From contig NW_021834109.1 in the NCBI RefSeq assembly GCF_006345805.1, forward strand, positions 1 through 29,136: a DNA stretch of 29,136 nt, given 5' to 3'. Each line of letters begins with the position of its first letter. The first letter of the stretch is position 1. Origin of the DNA: Octopus sinensis. Its lineage: Eukaryota. The position numbers and the translations under genes were made by a program. Shown here in pieces: positions 8,804-29,136 of the stretch. A model generated the notes under the pieces. The model worked only from the letters and a program-made list of their open reading frames with translations. It searched no databases and was not told the DNA's origin.

Positions 8804-9174
8804 ACAGATCTTAAAATTACTAATTAATCATTATCATTAAATTACTAATCTAAATTAATTCTTTAATTCCAAGAAAAAGTTCCAAAATAAATTTTAAACA
8901 TTTTGAGTTTGTGAAATCGTGGATGAAATCATTATGATGACAAATTCTAACATCAATCAATTTGAGCGTTGTTCTGTCGTAATCGGGAGTCTTTCATGAT
9001 GGTTTAAGAGTACTGATTGCAAATTACTATAAGTAGAACTTTTCGAATCGGGATTTTAAATATTTAAGTTTAGTTCAGGCACTGAGTGAATACATCATCT
9101 TCGCCGTTCCCATAAATTACAAACTCTTGAGTTTCTTAAAAATTTTGATGTAGTAGAAAGGAGAAGACGTATTT

Positions 9175-12112
9175 GTTGCTATGTCCTTCAATGTCAGAGG
9201 TCTGAAAACCGTGGCTAAGAGGCACCTTCTATGTACTGATCTCGAAAAATACCAGGGCTCTATATGCTGTCTACAGGAGACTAAAGTAAAACACGGACTT
9301 GACGAAATACACGGAAATTATCGCCTAATACTGCTTCCCTCAGAATCTATACATTATGGACAAGGATTCGCAATACACAAGAACCACACCTCCAGACTAT
9401 ATCGATATTGGAAAGTCAGCGATAGGATCAGCGTCTTACAACTACGTACAATCTCAAGCAGCAAGTCGAGGAGACTCACGTCAATTGTCAATGTCTACGC
9501 GCCACACAGTGGACGTATTCAAAAAAATCCAGAAGAACTTGATATCTTCTATGAGGAATTAGGAAGGACATTAACAGACCTCGGTTCTTCGTACTTTCTG
9601 TTTGTTGCCGGGGACTGGAATGCGAAAGTTGGAACCCGTAAGGAAACGAAAGTTTTATTGGCCATCACGGAAGAGGAATCAGAACTATCCAGGAACTGTT
9701 CTAGCTGAATTCTGTCGGGTCTTTGACCTATTCCTATGCAACACCGGTTTCCAGCATCCCGCGCGTCACAAAACGACGTGGACTGGCCAACGACCCTCAC
9801 CGACCGCAGGGTCCGTCAACATTTTCAACCAAATTGACTACATCGTCTGTCGAGCCGGGGAAAAATCGCTTCTCCGAGACTCAAGGTCTTATGGAGGTGC
9901 AGCTACTTACAGTGATCATAAAATTGTCTCTGCCAAGTTTGCTATGAAGACATCAATTGACCTACGACGAAGAGGGCCCAACGCTGATGTAAGGATAAGG
10001 CATAAAATCGAACAACTGTGCTCATCTACGCTGGTCAGAGACAACTACCAACTGTCAATCATGAAATCTCTTGGAAACATAAATGCCGAACTTTCTCCAG
10101 GAGGTGCCTGGGCGGAGACAATGAAAGGGATCCTCTTGGCAGCCGACGAGGCAATTGGCCTTCGGTCGCAAGTACTATGCAACAAAGGTATACACTCTGA
10201 TCTCCCTGCCCTCATCAAAGAACAAAAGGAGCTAAGACTACAACTGGAAAACACATCTGATCCGAAGAAGAAACAAATCTTACAGAATAGACGTTCATCT
10301 ACCCAGAAAAAAATCAAAATGTTGAACAAGACAAACTTCACTAACAAACTCGACTTAATAGCTGCAGGAATTGAACAGCTAAAGGACTCTTCAAAATGTT
10401 TACGGCAATCCGCCTACTCAACAGGAAAAACACAAACTCAAATCCATGACAGCAATGGAAGATTCATCACAAATCCCAAAGAGCAGGCTGAATATATAGC
10501 CTCGTATTTCGAGAGTATATTAACCGCTCACGGAGAAATATCCGATTACACCAGCGGATACACCACTCATCTCAGCCTACCTATCACCACCGGTGAAGTA
10601 TCAACTGCAATAGCCAAACTTAAAAATGGCCGCTCCTCTGGACCGGATGGAATAAATTCAGAACTGTTTTAATACGGACCGCCTGCACTAACAGACAAAC
10701 TGGCGGAGCTACTCAATGGTATGTTTATGAAAAAGGAATTCCTCGGTCTTGATTCCGGATTATTAATACCGATCCAAAAGCCTAACAAGCAGGCTGGGCC
10801 TGTCGAAAATCTACGCCCTATAATCTTGCTAAACACCTTACGGAAACTTTTGGGATTAGTTACACTGAACCGAATAAGAGAACAAGTGGACAACTATCTA
10901 TCCCCGAGTCATAGTGGATTTAGGACAGGAAGATCCACCGCCGATGCTGTTTGGGCCCACAAGTGGTACTGCGCTATCACCCAGAGATACAAAAAAGTGC
11001 AAAACAGTCCTGGGAATAGACCTGTCTAGGGCCTTTGACACGGTACGCCGTGGTCTACTCCTCAAAATACTGGAACAATTCCTGGACCCTGACTCTGTCA
11101 ATATGATAAGAGTACTACTATCGAACACAAAGCTCAAGGTGCGGGTCGGCACGGCGTTTTCCCGTGAATTCACGTGCAACGTGGTACCCCTCAGGGAGAC
11201 GCCCTCTCGCCGTTGCTATTCGTGATCTATCTGGAGACGGCACTACGAGACCTTCGAAAATTCTATGCTGGCAATATCGTCGAAATTGTATATGCAGATG
11301 ACGTCGACTTCGTGTCAGACGACAAATCGGCCTTACTTCGACTCCTTGAAGTGGCACCTGCTGAGCTGAACAGATGGTTCCTTAAAATGAACGTTGGAAA
11401 AACCGACATCGTTGAAATCATGAGGATGGAGAGCAGCTCAAGTGAAGCCTGGCGCAAAACGAGCAAACTCGGTTCTCTACTTGGGGACGGCCATGATATT
11501 GTCAGAAGAAAGGCTCTCGCTTGGGCCACGATGAACAAGATAAAGAAAGAGTGGATCGGCAAACGACGACTCTGTACGTCACTTCGTCTGAGGATGTATG
11601 AAGCCTTTGTCAAACCAATCCTGACATATAATTCGGCGACCTGGGGAATGTCTAGTACTGAACAACGTGGACTCGATTCTTTTCACCGCAGGCAACTTAG
11701 ATCCCTACTGGGATTGAACTGGCCTATAAGAATCAACCAGGAATCGCTATACAATAGATGCAGAACTGGCCCTCTGAGTGTGGAAATCGTTAATATGCGG
11801 TGGAGGTTATTTGGCCATATTCTACGAATGGACATGCTTGCCCCAGCTAACATAGCAATGGAGGGCTACTTCCTGAAGAGGGATCGAGCTTCCGTGGACG
11901 TCCACGTGTTACGCTGCCGGAAACACTTGACGGAGACCTGAAATGTGTGAAGAAAAGGCTAAGGAGTGGTGAGGATCTGGACAAGCTGAGGAAACTCGCT
12001 CACGACAGAGGAGGTTGGAGGAGGCTGGTTCAAAGGATTGTTTTTAATGCTGCACGAGTAAAATTATAACTAATATGATTCTACGTATGTTGCAAATAAT
12101 AATAATAATAAA
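9175..12112 (+). mobile_element. Non-LTR retrotransposon (LINE), APE endonuclease plus RT, RTE-like; stop at 10670 and several frameshifts; (AAT)5 tail
   Basis: SFNVRGL..CLQETK, VYAP, GDWNA, IDYI, SDHK (APE); GPDGI, RPIILL, IDLSRAFD, GTPQGDALSP, YADD (RT); DRGGWRRLV C-terminus; AAT repeats at 12095-12109. Confidence 0.95.
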
Positions 12113-16119: not shown

Positions 16120-17346
16120 ATGGTGATAAGAGTGCGGGATGTGGAGTGGGGCCAATCGGAGAGTGCATTATATCTCAAACTTGAACTGCATGGGAGCAGT
16201 CCGTCGTCGGTGGACATTGTGTGCACGAGGAGATACATCAAAGTATATAACCCCACCAATCAGGCCAATTACCAGCCTTACTTGTTTGAGTGTCTGCTCT
16301 ATGCAGATGTGGAAGAGGACGAGTCAACTGTGGTGATAAAAGAAGGACAAATAATGTTCAATCTGAGAAAAGTAGTCCCCGAAGTGTGGCCGACGTTCAT
16401 GTCGGAGGGTAGGGAAATGAAATAAGTTGCAGACAACAAGGAGAAGATGAGAGATGAAAGGGAGTGGAGGAAGGTGAAGGAAGACAAGAGTAGTGCACGC
16501 AAACAAATGGCAGTGAGGGCGGCCATTGCTGTACTCATCCCATCACACTTGCCCAGCTCGACTCAGAGAAGACTAGTCAAATCGAGCTGTTCAAGGAAAA
16601 GGAGAACAAGAAAGTGGCAGATGGACTGACAGCCCTGAAGGTGGCCTCCCCGAGTCATCCATCGACCACCAGACAAAATGAGTCTCCTAAAGAATTCCCA
16701 ATTCGTGATGCCGGGAAAATAAAAATGTCATTCACTGAGCGATATTTCCCAACACCCTCTCGGGAGTCGAGGGCGGAAGAGGAGGAGGAAGTGAGTGGTG
16801 AATCATAAGTGGCAGTGGTTGAGGAAGCAGGCGAGTGGTTGTCGGATCACAGGAGGGGAGTTGGAGTCCAACCCAGTCCTCATAAGGGACAAAGCAAAGT
16901 AAATATTCACAATATTCAGCAAATTTTACATTCACGGAGACTACGATTCTGCCATAAGCGCCTACTCCCACGGAATATCCCTCAGCCCAGGAATGCCCTC
17001 GTATTCCCCACTGTACTTTCAACAGACTCTACTCCAACCGGGCAGCCTCCTACCTTCAGAAGGGGTTATATTCAAACTGCATTCAGGATTGTCGCCAGGT
17101 ATTCCTCACCACACACCCAGGCACTCACACTCCTCCTCCCTCCAGTCCAGGCCAACAAACATAGTCGTCTGAAGGCGCTCTGTCGAATGGGGACTTCCTA
17201 CTTTCACCTTGGAGAGTATGGGGAAGGTGGGAGTATTCTGGCATCCTCTAGCTCGGGCTGCCCTTGAGAGTGCTCTTTCAATCGACCCCCTCAACCCACA
17301 ACTCCTCAGTGATTTGGAGATGATCAAGACGGTTGTTAACCAATAA
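16120..17346 (+). CDS. DNAAF4: Dynein axonemal assembly factor 4 (DYX1C1), 345 aa, CS/p23 domain plus TPRs. Introns 16243-16263, 16409-16432, 16531-16556, 16791-16815, 16899-16919, 17001-17025, 17099-17120, 17227-17251
   Basis: Spliced frame is open end to end and colinear with DYX1C1: VRDVEWGQS, YIKANYQPYLFE, GKIKMSFTERYFPTPSRES.AEEEEEWLRKQA, LYSNRAASYL, LKALCRMGT, ALSIDP. Confidence 0.92.
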
Positions 17347-17364
17347 ATGGTTTTGTGATGTGCT

Positions 17365-17600
17365 CAAATGGCAATAGAACAGAAAAGAGTGTCAATAGGA
17401 CAATGCAATAGGGCAGTCGTGAATTGCGTCTGATTGGCGTGCTATGGAAAATAGGACAGAAAAGGGTGCCAATTGAGCAGTACCAATGGGCAGTCGTATA
17501 CATAAGACAGTAGGATGAATTGCATCTGGTTGTCGGGTTGATAGTCCCAATAGGACACTCCCAATAGGACAGTCATAGCGTGAATTGCGTTCGATGAGCA
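17365..17600. repeat. Degenerate hierarchical minisatellite
   Basis: Recurring AATAGGACA, GGGCAGTCGT and TGAATTGC in three loose 55-100-bp blocks. Confidence 0.7.
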
Positions 17601-17659
17601 TTGTTTAATAAATGAGCATTCTCATCATTTCGTGATATATTTAATAAGTGCTACGGGAA

Positions 17660-18082
17660 ATGAGGAGAATGACGGAATTGGAAGACGTGTTGAAAGAGGA
17701 GGAATTTTACGTGTGGGATGAAGAAGACAAGTGTGGGAGCACGGTGAGTACAGTGCGACTGCACTCTTCGCAAATGTTCCTGACAGTAAAGACGAATTTG
17801 ATAGACGTGGTGAGTGATTGTGAGGAGGTAAAAGTGATCGACTGTTATCGGGTGCGTGACCTGAGGACGAAAGTGGAGTGTGGGTGGGCGAGACTGCAAT
17901 TCTGGCTGGGATCAGACCTGTTGAATTTGAGTGGAATGAACATGGCTTGCAATTTGTAGGAGAGAATAAAAGTAGAGGGATGTGTAACGTGGAAAAATAG
18001 AGTGGTGTTCGGCCCGGTGGTGAACAATTTGTGTCCACCGGACATAATTGTGAGGCAGTTGTTGTGGTTGTGTGAAGAGTAG
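17660..18082 (+). CDS. Possible unidentified coding region in the GC-rich island
   Basis: Purine-rich strand bias like DNAAF4; 99-codon frame MRRMTELEDVLKEEEFYVW, continuing in frame after TAG 17957-17959. No family recognised, no clean intron model. Confidence 0.3.
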
Positions 18083-18813
18083 GTTTATGATGTCGGCGGA
18101 GGGAGTGGTGAACGTGGGGAAATAAAGTAATTTTAGGAAGAGTAGAATTATTCGGTTTTTCCACGGGAAAATAAGCGAAAAGTCTTTTTTCGATTTTGGC
18201 AATTAGTCGGTCATAAACCAAGGACTGACATCGTTGTTGGGTTGAGTCTGGCGATGAATTTTACTAGCACTATTTTTGCACGGGAATCTGTCTAGCGGGG
18301 GATATTATATAGAGGTAACTAAAGCTTTTATTCGTTTTGAAAAATTGTTGATTACTTTTTGAATTGTTTACTTTAACGTATTATTGGAATCTGGAATATT
18401 TGGGACTTATATTGATTGAAAAACGTCAAATTTTTTATTATTCAAAGTTTCATAAATATTTTTTTTGTTTGAATAATTGAAATTATGTTCCCACGTGTTA
18501 TAGAGCTCCAGGCCTTTCTAGTGATATTCTTATGTTCTGAGAGGAAAAATAGTTCACGCACGTAGCATCTCAAACAATACACTTTTTCTTTGAAAGAGAG
18601 GTCTTATTTTTGCCATTCTTTTGCATCATAATTTTAACAAAAAATTCTACTCTTTTTGGTGATTTGTTGATTAATGAATATAAGAAATGAGGTTTGCATA
18701 ATTTTTAAATATTTAATTTTTCTAAATAGCTCAAATTTTTTACTGAATTTAACATTAACTTTTTTTTTTAAAAATTTTTTTTTTTAATAACGAAAACAAA
18801 AAAAAACTAGCTA

Positions 18814-18975: not shown

Positions 18976-19576
18976 CGAAATTAAGATTGTATTATGTTTT
19001 ACTGAATTCATATGAAATTGATTTATAATTATCGTTGATAATAACCTTTTTGGTTGCAAATAGGATAATAGTCGTCCTTATGAATGACGATCGGTCTTCC
19101 GCTGAAAATGAAAGAGAGACAGAGAGATATTATTGACCAAAAGACCAGGGTAAGCAAGTTAATTATAATTTCAAGTGATCCCCGATATCGCAAGCTTATT
19201 TTAGTATTTTTTTGTAAGATGGATAATTTTAGGCTTAGTTTTATTCACCAAGGCAAGTCTGAGCTTCTTTATTTAAAGAGAAGTACGATTTCCAACGTCA
19301 CAGGTTTCAAAGACAAAGGAAAAAGCACATTTTTTATTTTTGTCTATTTGCCATAATGTGGAATTTCAAAAAGTTACGGAAGATACCCGAAGTTGACTTT
19401 GATCTCTGAGATGAAGCTGTCTTTCAGTTGTTTTAAGAAAGTGGCTTGCATTAAACGCGACTTTCTCTAATATCTTATACTGTAAAAATCAAGCAGACTT
19501 ATATCTTGAATTTAAATAAAAATTGATAAGAATGAAAAACAATTGATGTTAACATTGATTTATCCCAAATTAAGAA

Positions 19577-19760
19577 GGCTTTGTGGTTGGTCGTAAGTGA
19601 TGCCTGTTGCCATCGTATGGTTGATGTGAACATGATAGTATTATGAAAGTAATACTCTCAGGTTTGAATAATGAGGGTCGTACTGGCTCAGGCCGGAAAC
19701 GGAGCAGGCAAAAGACCCCGCTTCTTCTATACGGTGATTACACCAATGGCGTCGCTTTTT
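19577..19760 (+). ncRNA. Signal recognition particle RNA (7SL), unusually short (~180 nt)
   Basis: Helix 8 motif CAGGCC-GGAA-ACGGAGCAGG (19689-19708) inside GGGTC/GACCC; helix 6 AGTATTAT-GAAA-GTAATACT; helix 5 pairings 19597-19604/19748-19755 and 19611-19620/19727-19736; T5 at 19756-19760. Confidence 0.9.
19756..19760 (+). terminator. RNA polymerase III oligo(T) terminator of the SRP RNA
   Basis: TTTTT directly after the 3' strand of helix 5. Confidence 0.75.
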
Positions 19761-20306
19761 GTTACAGCGTATATTGTCATAAGATCGCTAAATGTTCAAT
19801 AAATTTTTTTAATTTTAATTATTTCATTATGTGACCAAAAACAGACAAAGTAGGTAACTAAAAAACAGTCGAGAGCCTAAAAGTCAGCTCAACAACGCTG
19901 CGCTGTGTATTTAGTGACAGTTTTCGCGAAGCGCAGCGACTGAAATTTGCTAAAAAAGCCAACTAGTCGCCTTCCGGTCATTAATTTTCTTTGAAACTTT
20001 CAACCAATGTTAGAAAGAAGTAGAGTCGCAGCATTGCCGACGATTCCAAAGGTTTCGAAGACTACGGGGACAATGTAAATTAAGTGTAATGCGGAATTCT
20101 AATGGCACTTGTTTGCACAACAAGACATGAAAGCCGTTTGACAAAACTGTAGACACGCACCGCCAAGGGTGGGGCTGGCAGGTATCCAAAGCCTAAGCTT
20201 TAATGGATACCAATCATTAAAGATTCATCTTCCAGGAGTAATCTGTCGTAGAGATTATTTATTTATTAAACACCAAGACCACAGTTAAGACCAAACTAAT
20301 TAGCGT

Positions 20307-20460: not shown

Positions 20461-21870
20461 GAAATCTCCAAGTGAATTTGGTGGACCACGTAACGCCTTT
20501 CTAAGGCCGGATAGGAAGTCTTTAGATAGAAAGTCTTTAGAGTCAATCTCCCGTATGCGTCTTACACGGGTAGTTTAGTGAAGCCAACTGACGCAGGTTC
20601 GACTTTGAGTTAAGTTTGTATAATGTATTTAGGCAGAAGAATGGTTTTAATTCATTAATCAAATTATTAAATTCTTCTTTACATTATTCTAGTTTTTTTT
20701 TATTTTAATGTTAATATAAGTGAAATTTAATAATAAGTTCTTTGACTTCCATGTTATAGATCAACATTATGTTTTTATTTTCATAAAAAAACACGTCTTG
20801 AACAATCCTATGTATTATAAATGGCACATACTACTTATAACTATGGATAGAGTTGTTTCAAAATGCTGTTAAAATTACATGGATAAAATAACCCTTGAAT
20901 AATCAACGAAAATTTATATCCAATCCGTTATACTGAAAAGGACGCTTGAAAGTATGTTGATTAAACATAAGTATGGGATGAAGGTATTTGGTGAAGAATA
21001 TACCTTCGCTACCGACCTACCCGTGGTACTGGCATTCTTGTGGGATACTTCAATTAAAGGTATGAGACACATAACTTTATCTATGGTAGAAAATTCTCCC
21101 CTTTAAAAAGGAAAGAGATTTCCAACAGTAAAAAGTCAAAATCTCAATTAAATAGTGTAACCTTGATTAAATTTTGTTTTGTTTTAATAAAATTTTCTTA
21201 TAACTAAATTAATTTTTACTCAGTCTTAAAACATAAATATTATTTCGCGAGGCTGGCCGGGTGTCTAGTGAGGCCTTTAATTTCTTTCTTGTTTCTAACT
21301 AAAAAAAATGAAGCATATTGTGACAAAATGAGACATTTAATGACTAATTATGATTAAATTAATCTATCCATCCCTTTTAACATACATAAATTGACGAGTC
21401 TATTTATTCCTCCACACAGAGATGTATATTACTTGATTGATTAATATTGTTTCTAGTAACTTTTAATTGCTCTTAGATTTTACTTCAATTTTTACGTTTA
21501 ATTTTCATATTTCCGTGCAAGTTTTAATATAAATGATTACATAACAACTTGTAATATACTTTATGGAGTCACTTGTCATGTTTTTAATTTCCTTTATATT
21601 TAATTCCAAATTTAGAAATTAAAAATCCTGCAATTCTTGATTTCTGTAATCTATTTGTATTACTCGCAGGATTTTCACTTCTCTAGGCAAAACCAGTTTT
21701 TGAGATTTCAAAAAATTGAAATTGTGTAAGCTTAATTTTGAAGACTGTTGACGTTAACTCTTTTTATAAAAATAGACATAAATAGCACACAAGGAAATAA
21801 ATTATAAATATGTATAATTCCGTAGATGACGACAAATGTTAGTTTATCTGCTCATATTTATTTATCCAAG

Positions 21871-23407
21871 TATATCCCTCCACTGCACTCCCCCGACAAT
21901 GGATATGTCACAAACTACATTTCTACTCACTTATTATAAGCGTAGTATTACATGTCCAATAGAGACAAATACAACTGAATACAAGTATATTTATATATAA
22001 AATATTCAGTTGGACTAAAGATGGGATTCCTATTGACTTTGAAACTAATTACTATTTTTATAAAAATGGCAATAAGCTCGCATTTAGCAAGGGGTTCCAA
22101 GGAAATGGAATATTTCAATGTTCTGTCGAAAACGAATGTGGTTACGAAATATCTCTCCCAATGAATGTAGAGAGTCCAATACTACATATCGGTATATAGA
22201 AATGTTATAATTATAGTATATAATACATATACACTTCCATTTGCCATTCTAAGTGGAAATGGAATCACTGGCCAATGCACCTGGCACAGATGGCCCCAAT
22301 ATGCAGAGGAAATGACCAAAATTATAGGGAAAGCAGATCATGACAGATTTTATGTGGTCGACAATGATTTATATATAAAATACTTAATTGCCGAAGACTC
22401 TACGTGCAAGTATATTTGTATTGGGAACAAAGAGTTAAAATCATATTTTTTTAATTTCACTATTCAGGGTTTATTTTGATAATAATCTAAATTTTTAAGA
22501 ATCCGATTTTGATCTAATTCACTTTTTTCCAAAAACGTCAAACGTCGCGTTAGAGTTTGGAAAAGTCCATAATATCGTCCCTTGTTTCTATTTTGGAAGG
22601 TTTTCCCACCAACATTGATTTTAGGGTTGGAAACCCTGGCCTTTATTATAAGAATAATGAACTTATCTCATCTCACGTTATGAAAATAGTTGCCACTGAA
22701 AAAAAAGAACCTGAAATTTTTGCTTGTAGGTCTGAACACAAACCTCCACGAAAGAAAACCGAATTTTTATGTTTGAACGAGACATATGTAGATACGAAAG
22801 AAACTGAAAAAACATTTACTGTATCTATTTACGGTTAAAATAGTTTTAAATATTAAAGAATTGCCTGCCATTTCTGACTCCCTTCGCTCACAAAACGTCA
22901 CGTCTGGTAATACGGCGAATTTTAAATGTATTCCTGAAAAAGGGTACCCCGAACCTAAAATAAAGTGGTATATAAATTTAGAGGAATATGGTAATCACAC
23001 TATTATTACATTTAGAGACTTATTCGGATAAATTGGTATCAACACTGTCACAAAATAATTCATTTTTGAGTATTTTGACAGAAAAGTCAATGAGTATTCG
23101 ATGTCTTGTCGAAAATGATTTCGGAAAAGCTGTAAAGACTGTTTATTTGGTGGTCTCAGAACCACTAAATTTATTTCCAGATAGCCGGCAAAAGAGACGT
23201 GTGGTGTCTGCCTGGATTATTTTTCTCATATTTTTAGTAATAAGTATCATATTCATTGGAGTCGTATTTTATCGTCAATCAAAATACTCAAATAAGACAC
23301 AGAGGGACCCAAAAATATTTTATTTGACGGATCCTGAATATATGACACATTATAAAACTACGCTTTCGAGTATGGGCATTGCACGTCACCTAGTTGATGA
23401 TTTATAA
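21871..23407 (+). CDS. Ig-superfamily single-pass membrane protein (~4 Ig domains, TM, short tail); 5' exons unresolved. Introns 21985-22009, 22192-22216, 22469-22499, 22600-22624, 22834-22858, 22991-23015
   Basis: Removing six 25-31-nt introns gives 459 open codons: SITCP..WTKDG..GIFQCSVENECG; DSTCKYIC; NVTSGNTANFKCIPEKGYPEPKIKWY..IRCLVENDFG; TM AWIIFLIFLVISIIFIGVVFY; tail YLTDPEYM..DDL*. Confidence 0.85.
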
Positions 23408-28250: not shown

Positions 28251-28536
28251 TCAGTCAGTGGAAATCTTCTAGTCATTTGTATATAAAAAGGAATATTTAA
28301 TATATTGTAAGTTCGTGTTTCAACAATAAAATATTGTCTAAATTGCATCTCGAATTCGTTTTACTGTATTAGTTTATGATTTTTAAAAACAAAAAGTTAA
28401 ATTCTTATGCAAAAAAATCTTAGATATTTTTATATAATCTTAATCTATTGACAAATGGTCAACAGTTTTAGAAATTATTTGATTAGCTATATCAGATTTA
28501 ACTTAAGAATTCATTTTCTAAATAGTAAGTTGTTAA

Positions 28537-29136
28537 TTATAGTATGTAACAAGTATTGTCCAATTCTTTCGTCGTGGTTAACAACATATCAATAGCTACT
28601 TGAAATACATTTCGAACATTATAAAAAGTCGTAGAAGAACATTCAATATATTTTGAAGCACCTGATAAATCAAAACTAAAATACCAAGTTTTTTAGATTC
28701 CTTTAATCCTTTTTGGTAAGAAATTAATTTCAATTCACGTCTATTTAAATCATCGATGACATCCTGACTTTCTCTAAGGTCAGTCTTGGTCCCTACAACA
28801 ATAAATGGGGTGGTCTTTGGAAGGTGACAAGTCCACTGAGGATCACATAACTCGATTACCTTAGAAGGCAGAACATTAAATGACTGAGGTTCCACAACTG
28901 AACAACATATAATAAATATATCCTTATGTCAATATATAAAAGCGAACTGTCTCAGGATATAACAGTGGCCATGCTTGGTCTGAACTTTCATGTTCTGAAG
29001 TATCAATTATTTCAAATTTGATGGGAGTAGGGCCAGACTTCCCCTGACACATCAGCTTAGTAAAAGAAGGTTTAAGAATCCGGGGGACTTTGCTGGTGGC
29101 TGGTCCGTCGCTTGTGTAACTAACAATCAAACTGGT
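28537..29136 (-). CDS. Atypical Rho-family small GTPase; N-terminus and P-loop lie outside the window. Introns 28923-28947, 28836-28859, 28662-28684
   Basis: Spliced: TSLIVSYTSD..VPRILKPS..IIDTSEHESSDQAWPLLYPETDIFIICCSVVEPQSF..SKW..PFIVVGTKTDLR..KYIECSS..NVRNVFQVAI..TCYIL*, ending in a CAAX box. Confidence 0.88.

Follow-up and report, generated by a model that had tools for sequence, protein, structure and literature searches.

A candidate miniature SRP RNA with a single-hairpin Alu domain on a probable dicyemid contig of the Octopus sinensis assembly

The canonical signal recognition particle (SRP) must span the distance from the ribosomal exit tunnel to the elongation-factor site, as is known from cryo-EM of mammalian SRP–ribosome complexes. 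The SRP RNA of animals is generally regarded as canonical throughout, with a length of about 300 nt and a pair of Alu hairpins to which SRP9/14 binds, and a reduced Alu domain is not known to us from animals, also with PMC4605306 and PMC8137916 taken into account. In canonical Alu domains the UGUNR motif lies between helices 3 and 4, where it presumably contributes to the shape in which the Alu fold binds SRP9/14; the dikaryan fungi are without helices 3 and 4, and there the motif tends toward loop regions (PMC4605306; PMC8137916). Partial loss of the Alu domain is also described in Theileria annulata, the SRP RNA of which is without helix 4, and in Trypanosoma, where shortened helices occur together with a tRNA-like partner RNA (PMC8137916). 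The SRP RNA of microsporidia is reported to be only about 60 nt shorter than that of human, and these organisms are apparently without SRP9/14 and SRP68/72 (PMC5499648).

In this work, we describe an SRP RNA gene of about 180 nt that is encoded at positions 19577–19760 (+) of contig VCDQ01010037.1 of the Octopus sinensis assembly GCA_006345805.1. The whole contig of 29,136 bases (G+C 34.6%) was analysed and is referred to below as the window. The explanation towards which we lean is that the locus encodes a working SRP RNA of a dicyemid whose DNA is present in the O. sinensis assembly, and that the Alu domain of this RNA is reduced as in dikaryan fungi. If the scaffold is indeed dicyemid, this would be the first time that an Alu domain of the fungal style, with one hairpin, is seen in the SRP RNA of an animal. 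Our literature search combining dicyemids with SRP RNA or SRP components found no link between them in the papers and supplements that it covered.

Family membership, S domain and helix 5

Membership in the SRP RNA family was judged against Rfam clan CL00003, a check against the SRP models that had been suggested by a sequence-only reading of this DNA. The sole Rfam match at gathering threshold across the 29,136-base window was Protozoa_SRP (RF01856) at 19542–19758 (+), with 75.1 bits against a gathering threshold of 65 and E = 4.8e-14; the first 60 model positions at the 5' side of this alignment have low posterior probability. In a permissive scan of 19000–20300, the top match within the clan was Metazoa_SRP (RF00017), which reached 69.8 bits (E = 3.5e-17) and stayed 0.2 bits short of its threshold of 70. 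The metazoan match was local only: positions 19605–19745 aligned to model positions 104–247 of 299, which comprise the S domain and the proximal part of helix 5, and model positions 1–103 and 248–299 have no counterpart in the RNA at 19577–19760. The RNA falls narrowly outside Metazoa_SRP by score and clearly outside it by the helix 3/4 Alu domain.

The minimum free energy (MFE) fold of 19577–19760 has an energy of −62.4 kcal/mol and a z-score of −3.05 relative to shuffled sequences. The 20-mer at the core of helix 8 occurs a single time in the window, with 0 chance matches expected, and neither the search with this 20-mer nor the Rfam scan revealed a second SRP RNA copy in the 29 kb. Metagenome contigs yielded 0 matches both to the lineage-specific S-domain pattern and to a generic pattern of helix 8 followed by a short tail and T5. 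The 63-aa spurious ORF overlapping the SRP RNA had no record on contigs from other samples.

The two hairpins of the S domain are delimited by the Rfam alignments. Helix 6, at 19628–19665 (+), is capped by a GAAA tetraloop of the GNAR type (19645–19648) and corresponds to the SRP19 site. Helix 8, at 19674–19719 (+), carries a GAAA tetraloop of the GNRA type (19696–19699) closed by a G–C pair, and corresponds to the site of the SRP54 M domain. The symmetric loop of helix 8 is formed by the strands CAGG (19689–19692) and AGCA (19703–19706), the asymmetric loop is also present, and the posterior probabilities are near 1 throughout the helix. The sequence-only reading had placed a GGAA loop on helix 8; the loop is there, but the register of the model makes it GAAA, one base further to the right.

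The 5' strand of helix 5 occupies about 19595–19628 (+, 34 nt) and the 3' strand about 19719–19757 (+, 39 nt), close to the lengths of 35–40 nt that had been proposed for both. The first is defined by the MFE fold, in which its pair probabilities are about 1.0, and the second by the same fold and by the Rfam alignment. Along the 5' strand, a distal block of 13 bp is followed by a 5e-like internal loop, a block of 10 bp and a short proximal segment, and 19605–19627 is the part aligned to helix 5 of Metazoa_SRP. The 3' strand includes an AUU loop at 19737–19739 and a 5-nt bulge, CCAAU, at 19743–19747. In the 5e region, UGC faces this AUU in a 3 × 3 internal loop, which is near the GAU of the model and matches it in part.

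Measured from the 5' hairpin described below to the S domain, helix 5 comprises about 28 bp, 13 of them distal to the 5e-like loop, and going by the 299-position metazoan model both of its strands have roughly half their usual extent. The whole RNA, about 180 nt against the 299 nt of the metazoan model, agrees with the shortening by some 40% that had been suggested from the letters. The S domain is complete: helix 6 and helix 8 are intact together with the loops for SRP54, and a 5e-like loop is present that matches the motif in part. The identification of an SRP RNA with a full S domain, which the sequence-only reading had made, is borne out both by the 75.1-bit match to Protozoa_SRP and by the S-domain match to Metazoa_SRP. 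Judging from these features, the RNA is predicted to bind SRP19 through the tetraloops of helices 6 and 8 and SRP54 through the loops of helix 8, and it probably binds SRP68/72 through the 5e-like loop.

The 5' hairpin, gene ends and signs of selection

Only 18 nt precede helix 5 in the fold (the earlier count was 20), and they consist of a 16-nt hairpin and a GU dinucleotide. The hairpin, at 19577–19592 (+) in the MFE fold, has a 4-bp stem (GGCU/GGUC) and an 8-nt loop, UUGUGGUU. It is weak in energy (−3.2 kcal/mol), and the pair probabilities of its stem are 0.96–0.97. The loop contains UGUGG at 19582–19586, a match to UGUNR, the motif that makes the U-turn contacted by SRP9/14 in eukaryotic Alu domains. 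A hairpin of at least this stability with UGUNR in its loop was formed by 0.33% of the shuffles of these 20 nt and by 5 of the 29,116 20-mers of the window, figures that give moderate support, as this chance test was devised after the motif had been noticed. We propose that this hairpin would be the sole remnant of the Alu 5' domain. The sequence-only reading had called the Alu domain vestigial and had seen no Alu hairpins upstream; the domain is much reduced indeed, but the 5' hairpin with its UGUNR loop makes it more than a bare vestige.

No other part of an Alu domain could be recognised nearby. The permissive Rfam scan returned no SRP-clan match within 19400–19630, even at E ≤ 10 with lax filters. 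The 77 nt immediately upstream (19500–19576) are no better structured than their shuffles (z = −0.24), and the centroid structure of 19500–19760 leaves them unpaired. Neither this upstream search nor refolding gives a pair of helices 3 and 4, and helix 2 is absent from the RNA as well. We considered a two-hairpin fold in which the stem GGCU/GGUC is followed by a second one, GAUG/CAUC, with GUAAGU as the linker, and rejected it, as it costs 13.5 kcal/mol and its ensemble probability is zero. This is the only way to draw helix 3, GUAAGU and helix 4 from the 5' end of the RNA itself, and it competes with helix 5. The UGG in the hairpin loop (19584–19586) is complementary to the CCA in the CCAAU bulge (19743–19747), and their pairing could mimic the canonical loop–loop contact of the Alu domain, a speculative idea, since a complementarity of three base pairs is well within chance.

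At the 3' side, a T5 run at 19756–19760 (+), a terminator of the RNA polymerase III type, is located exactly at the end of helix 5. It is the only run of T4 or longer between 19435 and 19800, with none inside the RNA. At the 5' side, the T4 at 19431–19434 and the T6 and T5 runs at 19330–19341 limit the upstream reach of any polymerase III start. The AT-rich flank between these points and the RNA (19435–19576, +), delimited by a scan of G+C content and T runs, is the presumed promoter region; no promoter element was recognised in it, only AT-rich stretches. The G+C content is 47.5% in the RNA and 12–35% in its flanks (12–30% in the upstream one), and neither an A-rich tail nor flanking direct repeats, as target-site duplications would be, were found around the RNA. 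The sequence-only reading had noted the T5 terminator as well as an AT-rich upstream flank without Alu hairpins, and both observations hold: the terminator is joined by the lack of an internal T4, and the flank by its G+C content, the z-score given above and the missing SRP-clan match.

Several repeats lie close to the gene. A 13-nt direct repeat, TTGATGTTAACAT / TTGATGTGAACAT, is located at 19543–19555 and 19621–19633 (+). Its first copy precedes the presumed RNA start by 22–34 nt, and its second falls within the RNA, where helices 5 and 6 meet; the repeat may be due to chance, as we estimate that roughly 0.1–0.3 such pairs are expected in the stretch. A weak palindrome covers 19541–19560. 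On the downstream side, a perfect 9-bp inverted repeat with a 25-nt spacer, CGCTGCGCT ... AGCGCAGCG, at 19896–19938 (+), follows the SRP RNA at a distance of about 140 nt, in a patch where the G+C content is locally higher; near it Rfam gave only an insignificant, snoRNA-like match (SNORA26, 16.7 bits, E = 5.8).

In the region aligned to Metazoa_SRP, 45 of the 58 model pairs are canonical. Pairs altered on both sides yet still able to form number 21, against 3 with a one-sided change, in a count made relative to the Rfam consensus sequences only and on an alignment that is itself fitted to the model. Among the 11 non-canonical pairs, three repeat a non-Watson–Crick pair of the consensus, while eight pairs of the model are broken. 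In helix 6, all eight apical pairs have been switched on both sides, from G–C to A–U or U–A, with pairing kept. The RNA does not look like a simple truncation or a 5'-truncated retrocopy, since the helix 5 strands are both short and pair with each other with a probability of about 1.0. Several features thus argue for an RNA that has been shaped by long-standing selection on its structure and not by decay.

Source of the contig and competing explanations

The genes that flank the SRP RNA have extremely small introns. Upstream of it, a gene for DNAAF4 with CS and TPR domains (16120–17347, +) contains eight GT..AG introns of 21–26 nt, and removal of these introns, which lie between 16409 and 17251, yields a single 344-codon frame with no in-frame stop. 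The product aligns with metazoan DNAAF4 proteins at 99–100% coverage and at only 30–36% identity; its closest matches are gastropod proteins (best 36%), and a close cephalopod relative is absent. The NCBI model on this contig, 'dynein assembly factor 4, axonemal-like [Octopus sinensis]', has 176 aa and one intron of 158 nt, and the search for its relatives returned only the model itself. As the full-length 344-aa frame appears once the eight mini-introns are removed, the deposited model is, judging from the gene structure, a mis-prediction. Downstream of the RNA, a gene for an Ig-domain transmembrane protein (21830–23407, +) has at least four clear GT..AG introns, AT-rich and 25–31 nt long; its product ends in a C-terminal transmembrane segment, and the matches to Ig domains lie below the Pfam thresholds. 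Mini-intron genes are therefore present on both sides, which places the RNA gene within mini-intron DNA and argues that the contig is no chimera.

Introns of 21–31 nt are, to our knowledge, not typical of cephalopods. In dicyemids the median intron is 27 bp long, and two thirds of the introns are shorter than 30 bp (PMC6543705), a property shared by the DNAAF4 gene (21–26 nt) and the Ig gene (25–31 nt). Dicyema japonicum has been collected from the renal sacs of O. sinensis, and its genome of 67.5 Mb has a G+C content of 36.7%, 49% of repeats and many LINE copies (PMC6736024). From the gene structure and this host association, we consider it probable that the contig is dicyemid mesozoan DNA contaminating the O. 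sinensis assembly. The most likely owner of the SRP RNA is then a dicyemid, a highly reduced and fast-evolving parasite that is still an animal. The sequence-only reading had described an animal SRP RNA, which remains correct if the source is a dicyemid; the octopus itself is very probably not the owner, given the mini-introns of the flanking genes.

An origin of the contig from a ciliate or another protist is unlikely. Named animals and Logan contigs account for all of the 84 best DNAAF4 matches, and the only further match is a plant STI1-domain protein in the last place; the presence of Ig domains and the 344-codon DNAAF4 frame uninterrupted by stops also oppose such an origin. The window contains in addition a degenerate LINE (non-LTR retrotransposon) at 9037–11941 (+), with an AP-endonuclease domain and a frameshifted reverse transcriptase. 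The nearest relatives of the latter are labelled O. sinensis (47–59% identity) and are followed by elements of sponges, sea slugs and oomycetes; the relatives labelled O. sinensis could belong to the host or to the contaminant alike, and would thus be uninformative for the taxonomy of the contig. A gene for a small GTPase of the Ras superfamily (Pfam Ras, 37.5 bits) at 28511–29136 (−) runs off the end of the window and is Rho/Rac-like by eye. Just downstream of DNAAF4, positions 17400–18300 have on both strands a G+C content of 40–47% with a strong positive GC skew. An ORF of 198 aa in this stretch, rich in Pro, Ser and Thr and read from the minus strand, matched nothing in Pfam; the stretch may be either another mini-intron gene or a repeat.

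Several other explanations of the short RNA have to be weighed. Many animal genomes contain several 7SL copies, and our inspection covered one 29-kb contig of the genome in question, so that the gene might be a secondary or decaying copy while a canonical 7SL of roughly 300 nt elsewhere in the same genome does the work. The Metazoa_SRP score below its threshold and the eight broken pairs would fit such a copy. We nevertheless regard this as unlikely: the shortening is matched on the two strands of helix 5, which pair; double changes that keep the pairing outnumber one-sided ones by 21 to 3; all protein-binding motifs are intact, the terminator is precise, and the G+C content has been retained in an AT-rich setting. 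Neutral decay is disfavoured because it would not yield matched shortening, compensated pairs, intact motifs and a precise terminator. The RNA could also start further upstream, at about 19435–19576, and be a longer molecule with a non-canonical, AT-rich 5' extension. No run of T4 or longer would stop such a transcript between 19435 and 19755, the TATA-like stretches at 19500–19530 are too distant to serve a start at 19577 at the usual TATA-to-start spacing of about 25–30 bp, and the weak palindrome at 19541–19560 would belong to the extension. This reading appears distinctly unlikely to us, as the 77 nt fold like their shuffles and are unpaired in the centroid, and the G+C content falls to 12–30% just before 19577; with no SRP-family match there, the extension would in any case be no helix 3/4 Alu domain.

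Still less probable are two explanations that concern the nature of the DNA. One is that the contig really belongs to the nuclear genome of the octopus, in which case the RNA would be an octopus small RNA derived from 7SL or a divergent extra copy; this is suggested by the deposition of the contig as O. sinensis, by the NCBI-annotated gene on it and by the O. sinensis labels of the nearest LINE reverse-transcriptase relatives (47–59% identity). Yet those relatives may themselves sit on contaminant contigs, DNAAF4 is without a close cephalopod relative (its best match, at 36%, being from a gastropod), and the introns of 21–31 nt in the genes flanking the RNA are typical of dicyemids (PMC6543705), which makes an octopus origin improbable. 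A SINE derived from 7SL, or a retroposed pseudogene, is the least likely of all, and we give it very little credence. The T5 run follows directly after the RNA, which is without an A-rich tail or target-site duplications and is present as one copy in the window. In the 7SL SINEs that are known, the Alu part remains and the S domain is gone; here it is the S domain that is retained, which is the wrong part for such an element. It may be said in favour of a retroposed origin that 7SL-derived SINEs occur in primates, rodents and hagfish (PMC10886601), and that a LINE is present in the window at 9037–11941.

Possible function and relation to known SRP RNAs

We thus return to a working dicyemid SRP RNA as the favoured reading. 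With a start near G19577 and an end in the T5 run, the gene would produce an RNA polymerase III transcript of about 181–184 nt. Its complete S domain would bind SRP19, SRP54 and SRP68/72, and recognition of signal sequences and docking to the receptor would proceed as in other eukaryotes. At the opposite end, helices 3 and 4 appear from the in silico folding to be replaced by one 4-bp hairpin with a UGUNR loop, and the Alu end would consist of this hairpin stacked on a 13-bp helix. An SRP14-type protein may still bind there, as in fungi, because the 5' hairpin with UGUNR matches the arrangement of dikaryan fungi (PMC4605306). With a helix 5 of about 28 bp, the particle would probably not be long enough to connect the exit tunnel with the elongation-factor site. 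Because such a particle could not span this distance, elongation arrest would be absent, weak or achieved by other means, as judged from the length alone.

It is our tentative suggestion, which we hold with less assurance than the assignment of the contig, that the SRP RNA used by dicyemids is about 180 nt long, with a single UGUNR hairpin as the Alu 5' domain and a halved helix 5. If this is true, an animal lineage has either given up the arrest of elongation by SRP or moved it to another factor or to a partner RNA as in trypanosomatids. The fungal type of Alu reduction would then have evolved twice and independently, and the dicyemid SRP RNA would have a smaller length than the one reported for microsporidia. 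Such an RNA would offer a natural test, in a metazoan, of the extent to which targeting and elongation arrest depend on the Alu domain and on the 'ruler' of helix 5, and would add a molecular example to the extreme reduction seen in dicyemids. The locus also draws attention to probable parasite DNA, and to a gene that has been modelled wrongly, in the public reference assembly of the octopus.

In comparison with the metazoan 7SL RNA (RF00017), the proximal helix 5 and helices 6 and 8 align, and the tetraloop classes, the CAGG/AGCA symmetric loop for SRP54 and the U-tract end of the polymerase III type are shared, and the 5e-like loop resembles that of the model in part. The differences are in the length, about 181–184 nt against a model of 299 positions, and in the lack of helix 2 and of the helix 3/helix 4 pair. 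The SRP RNAs of fungi are longer, about 250–520 nt. It is nevertheless the dikaryan fungi, including S. pombe, C. neoformans and their relatives, that come closest in architecture, being without helices 3 and 4 and having UGUNR in a loop; they differ in that fungal SRP RNAs often contain extra helices 9–11, and Srp21 takes the place of SRP9 (PMC4605306). As the RNA at 19577–19760 would belong to an animal lineage, its reduction would be independent of the fungal one. With the SRP RNAs of protists it shares the loss of one or both Alu hairpins, and its best global Rfam match is the protozoan model; unlike it, the RNAs of Theileria and Trypanosoma retain a long helix 5. The closest biology is that of the microsporidian Encephalitozoon, a reduced parasite with a shortened SRP RNA and no canonical Alu domain (PMC5499648). 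Compared with the microsporidian RNA, the RNA described here goes further in its reduction of length, as it falls about 115 nt short of the metazoan model, and at the same time keeps a 5e-like loop, the putative site of SRP72.
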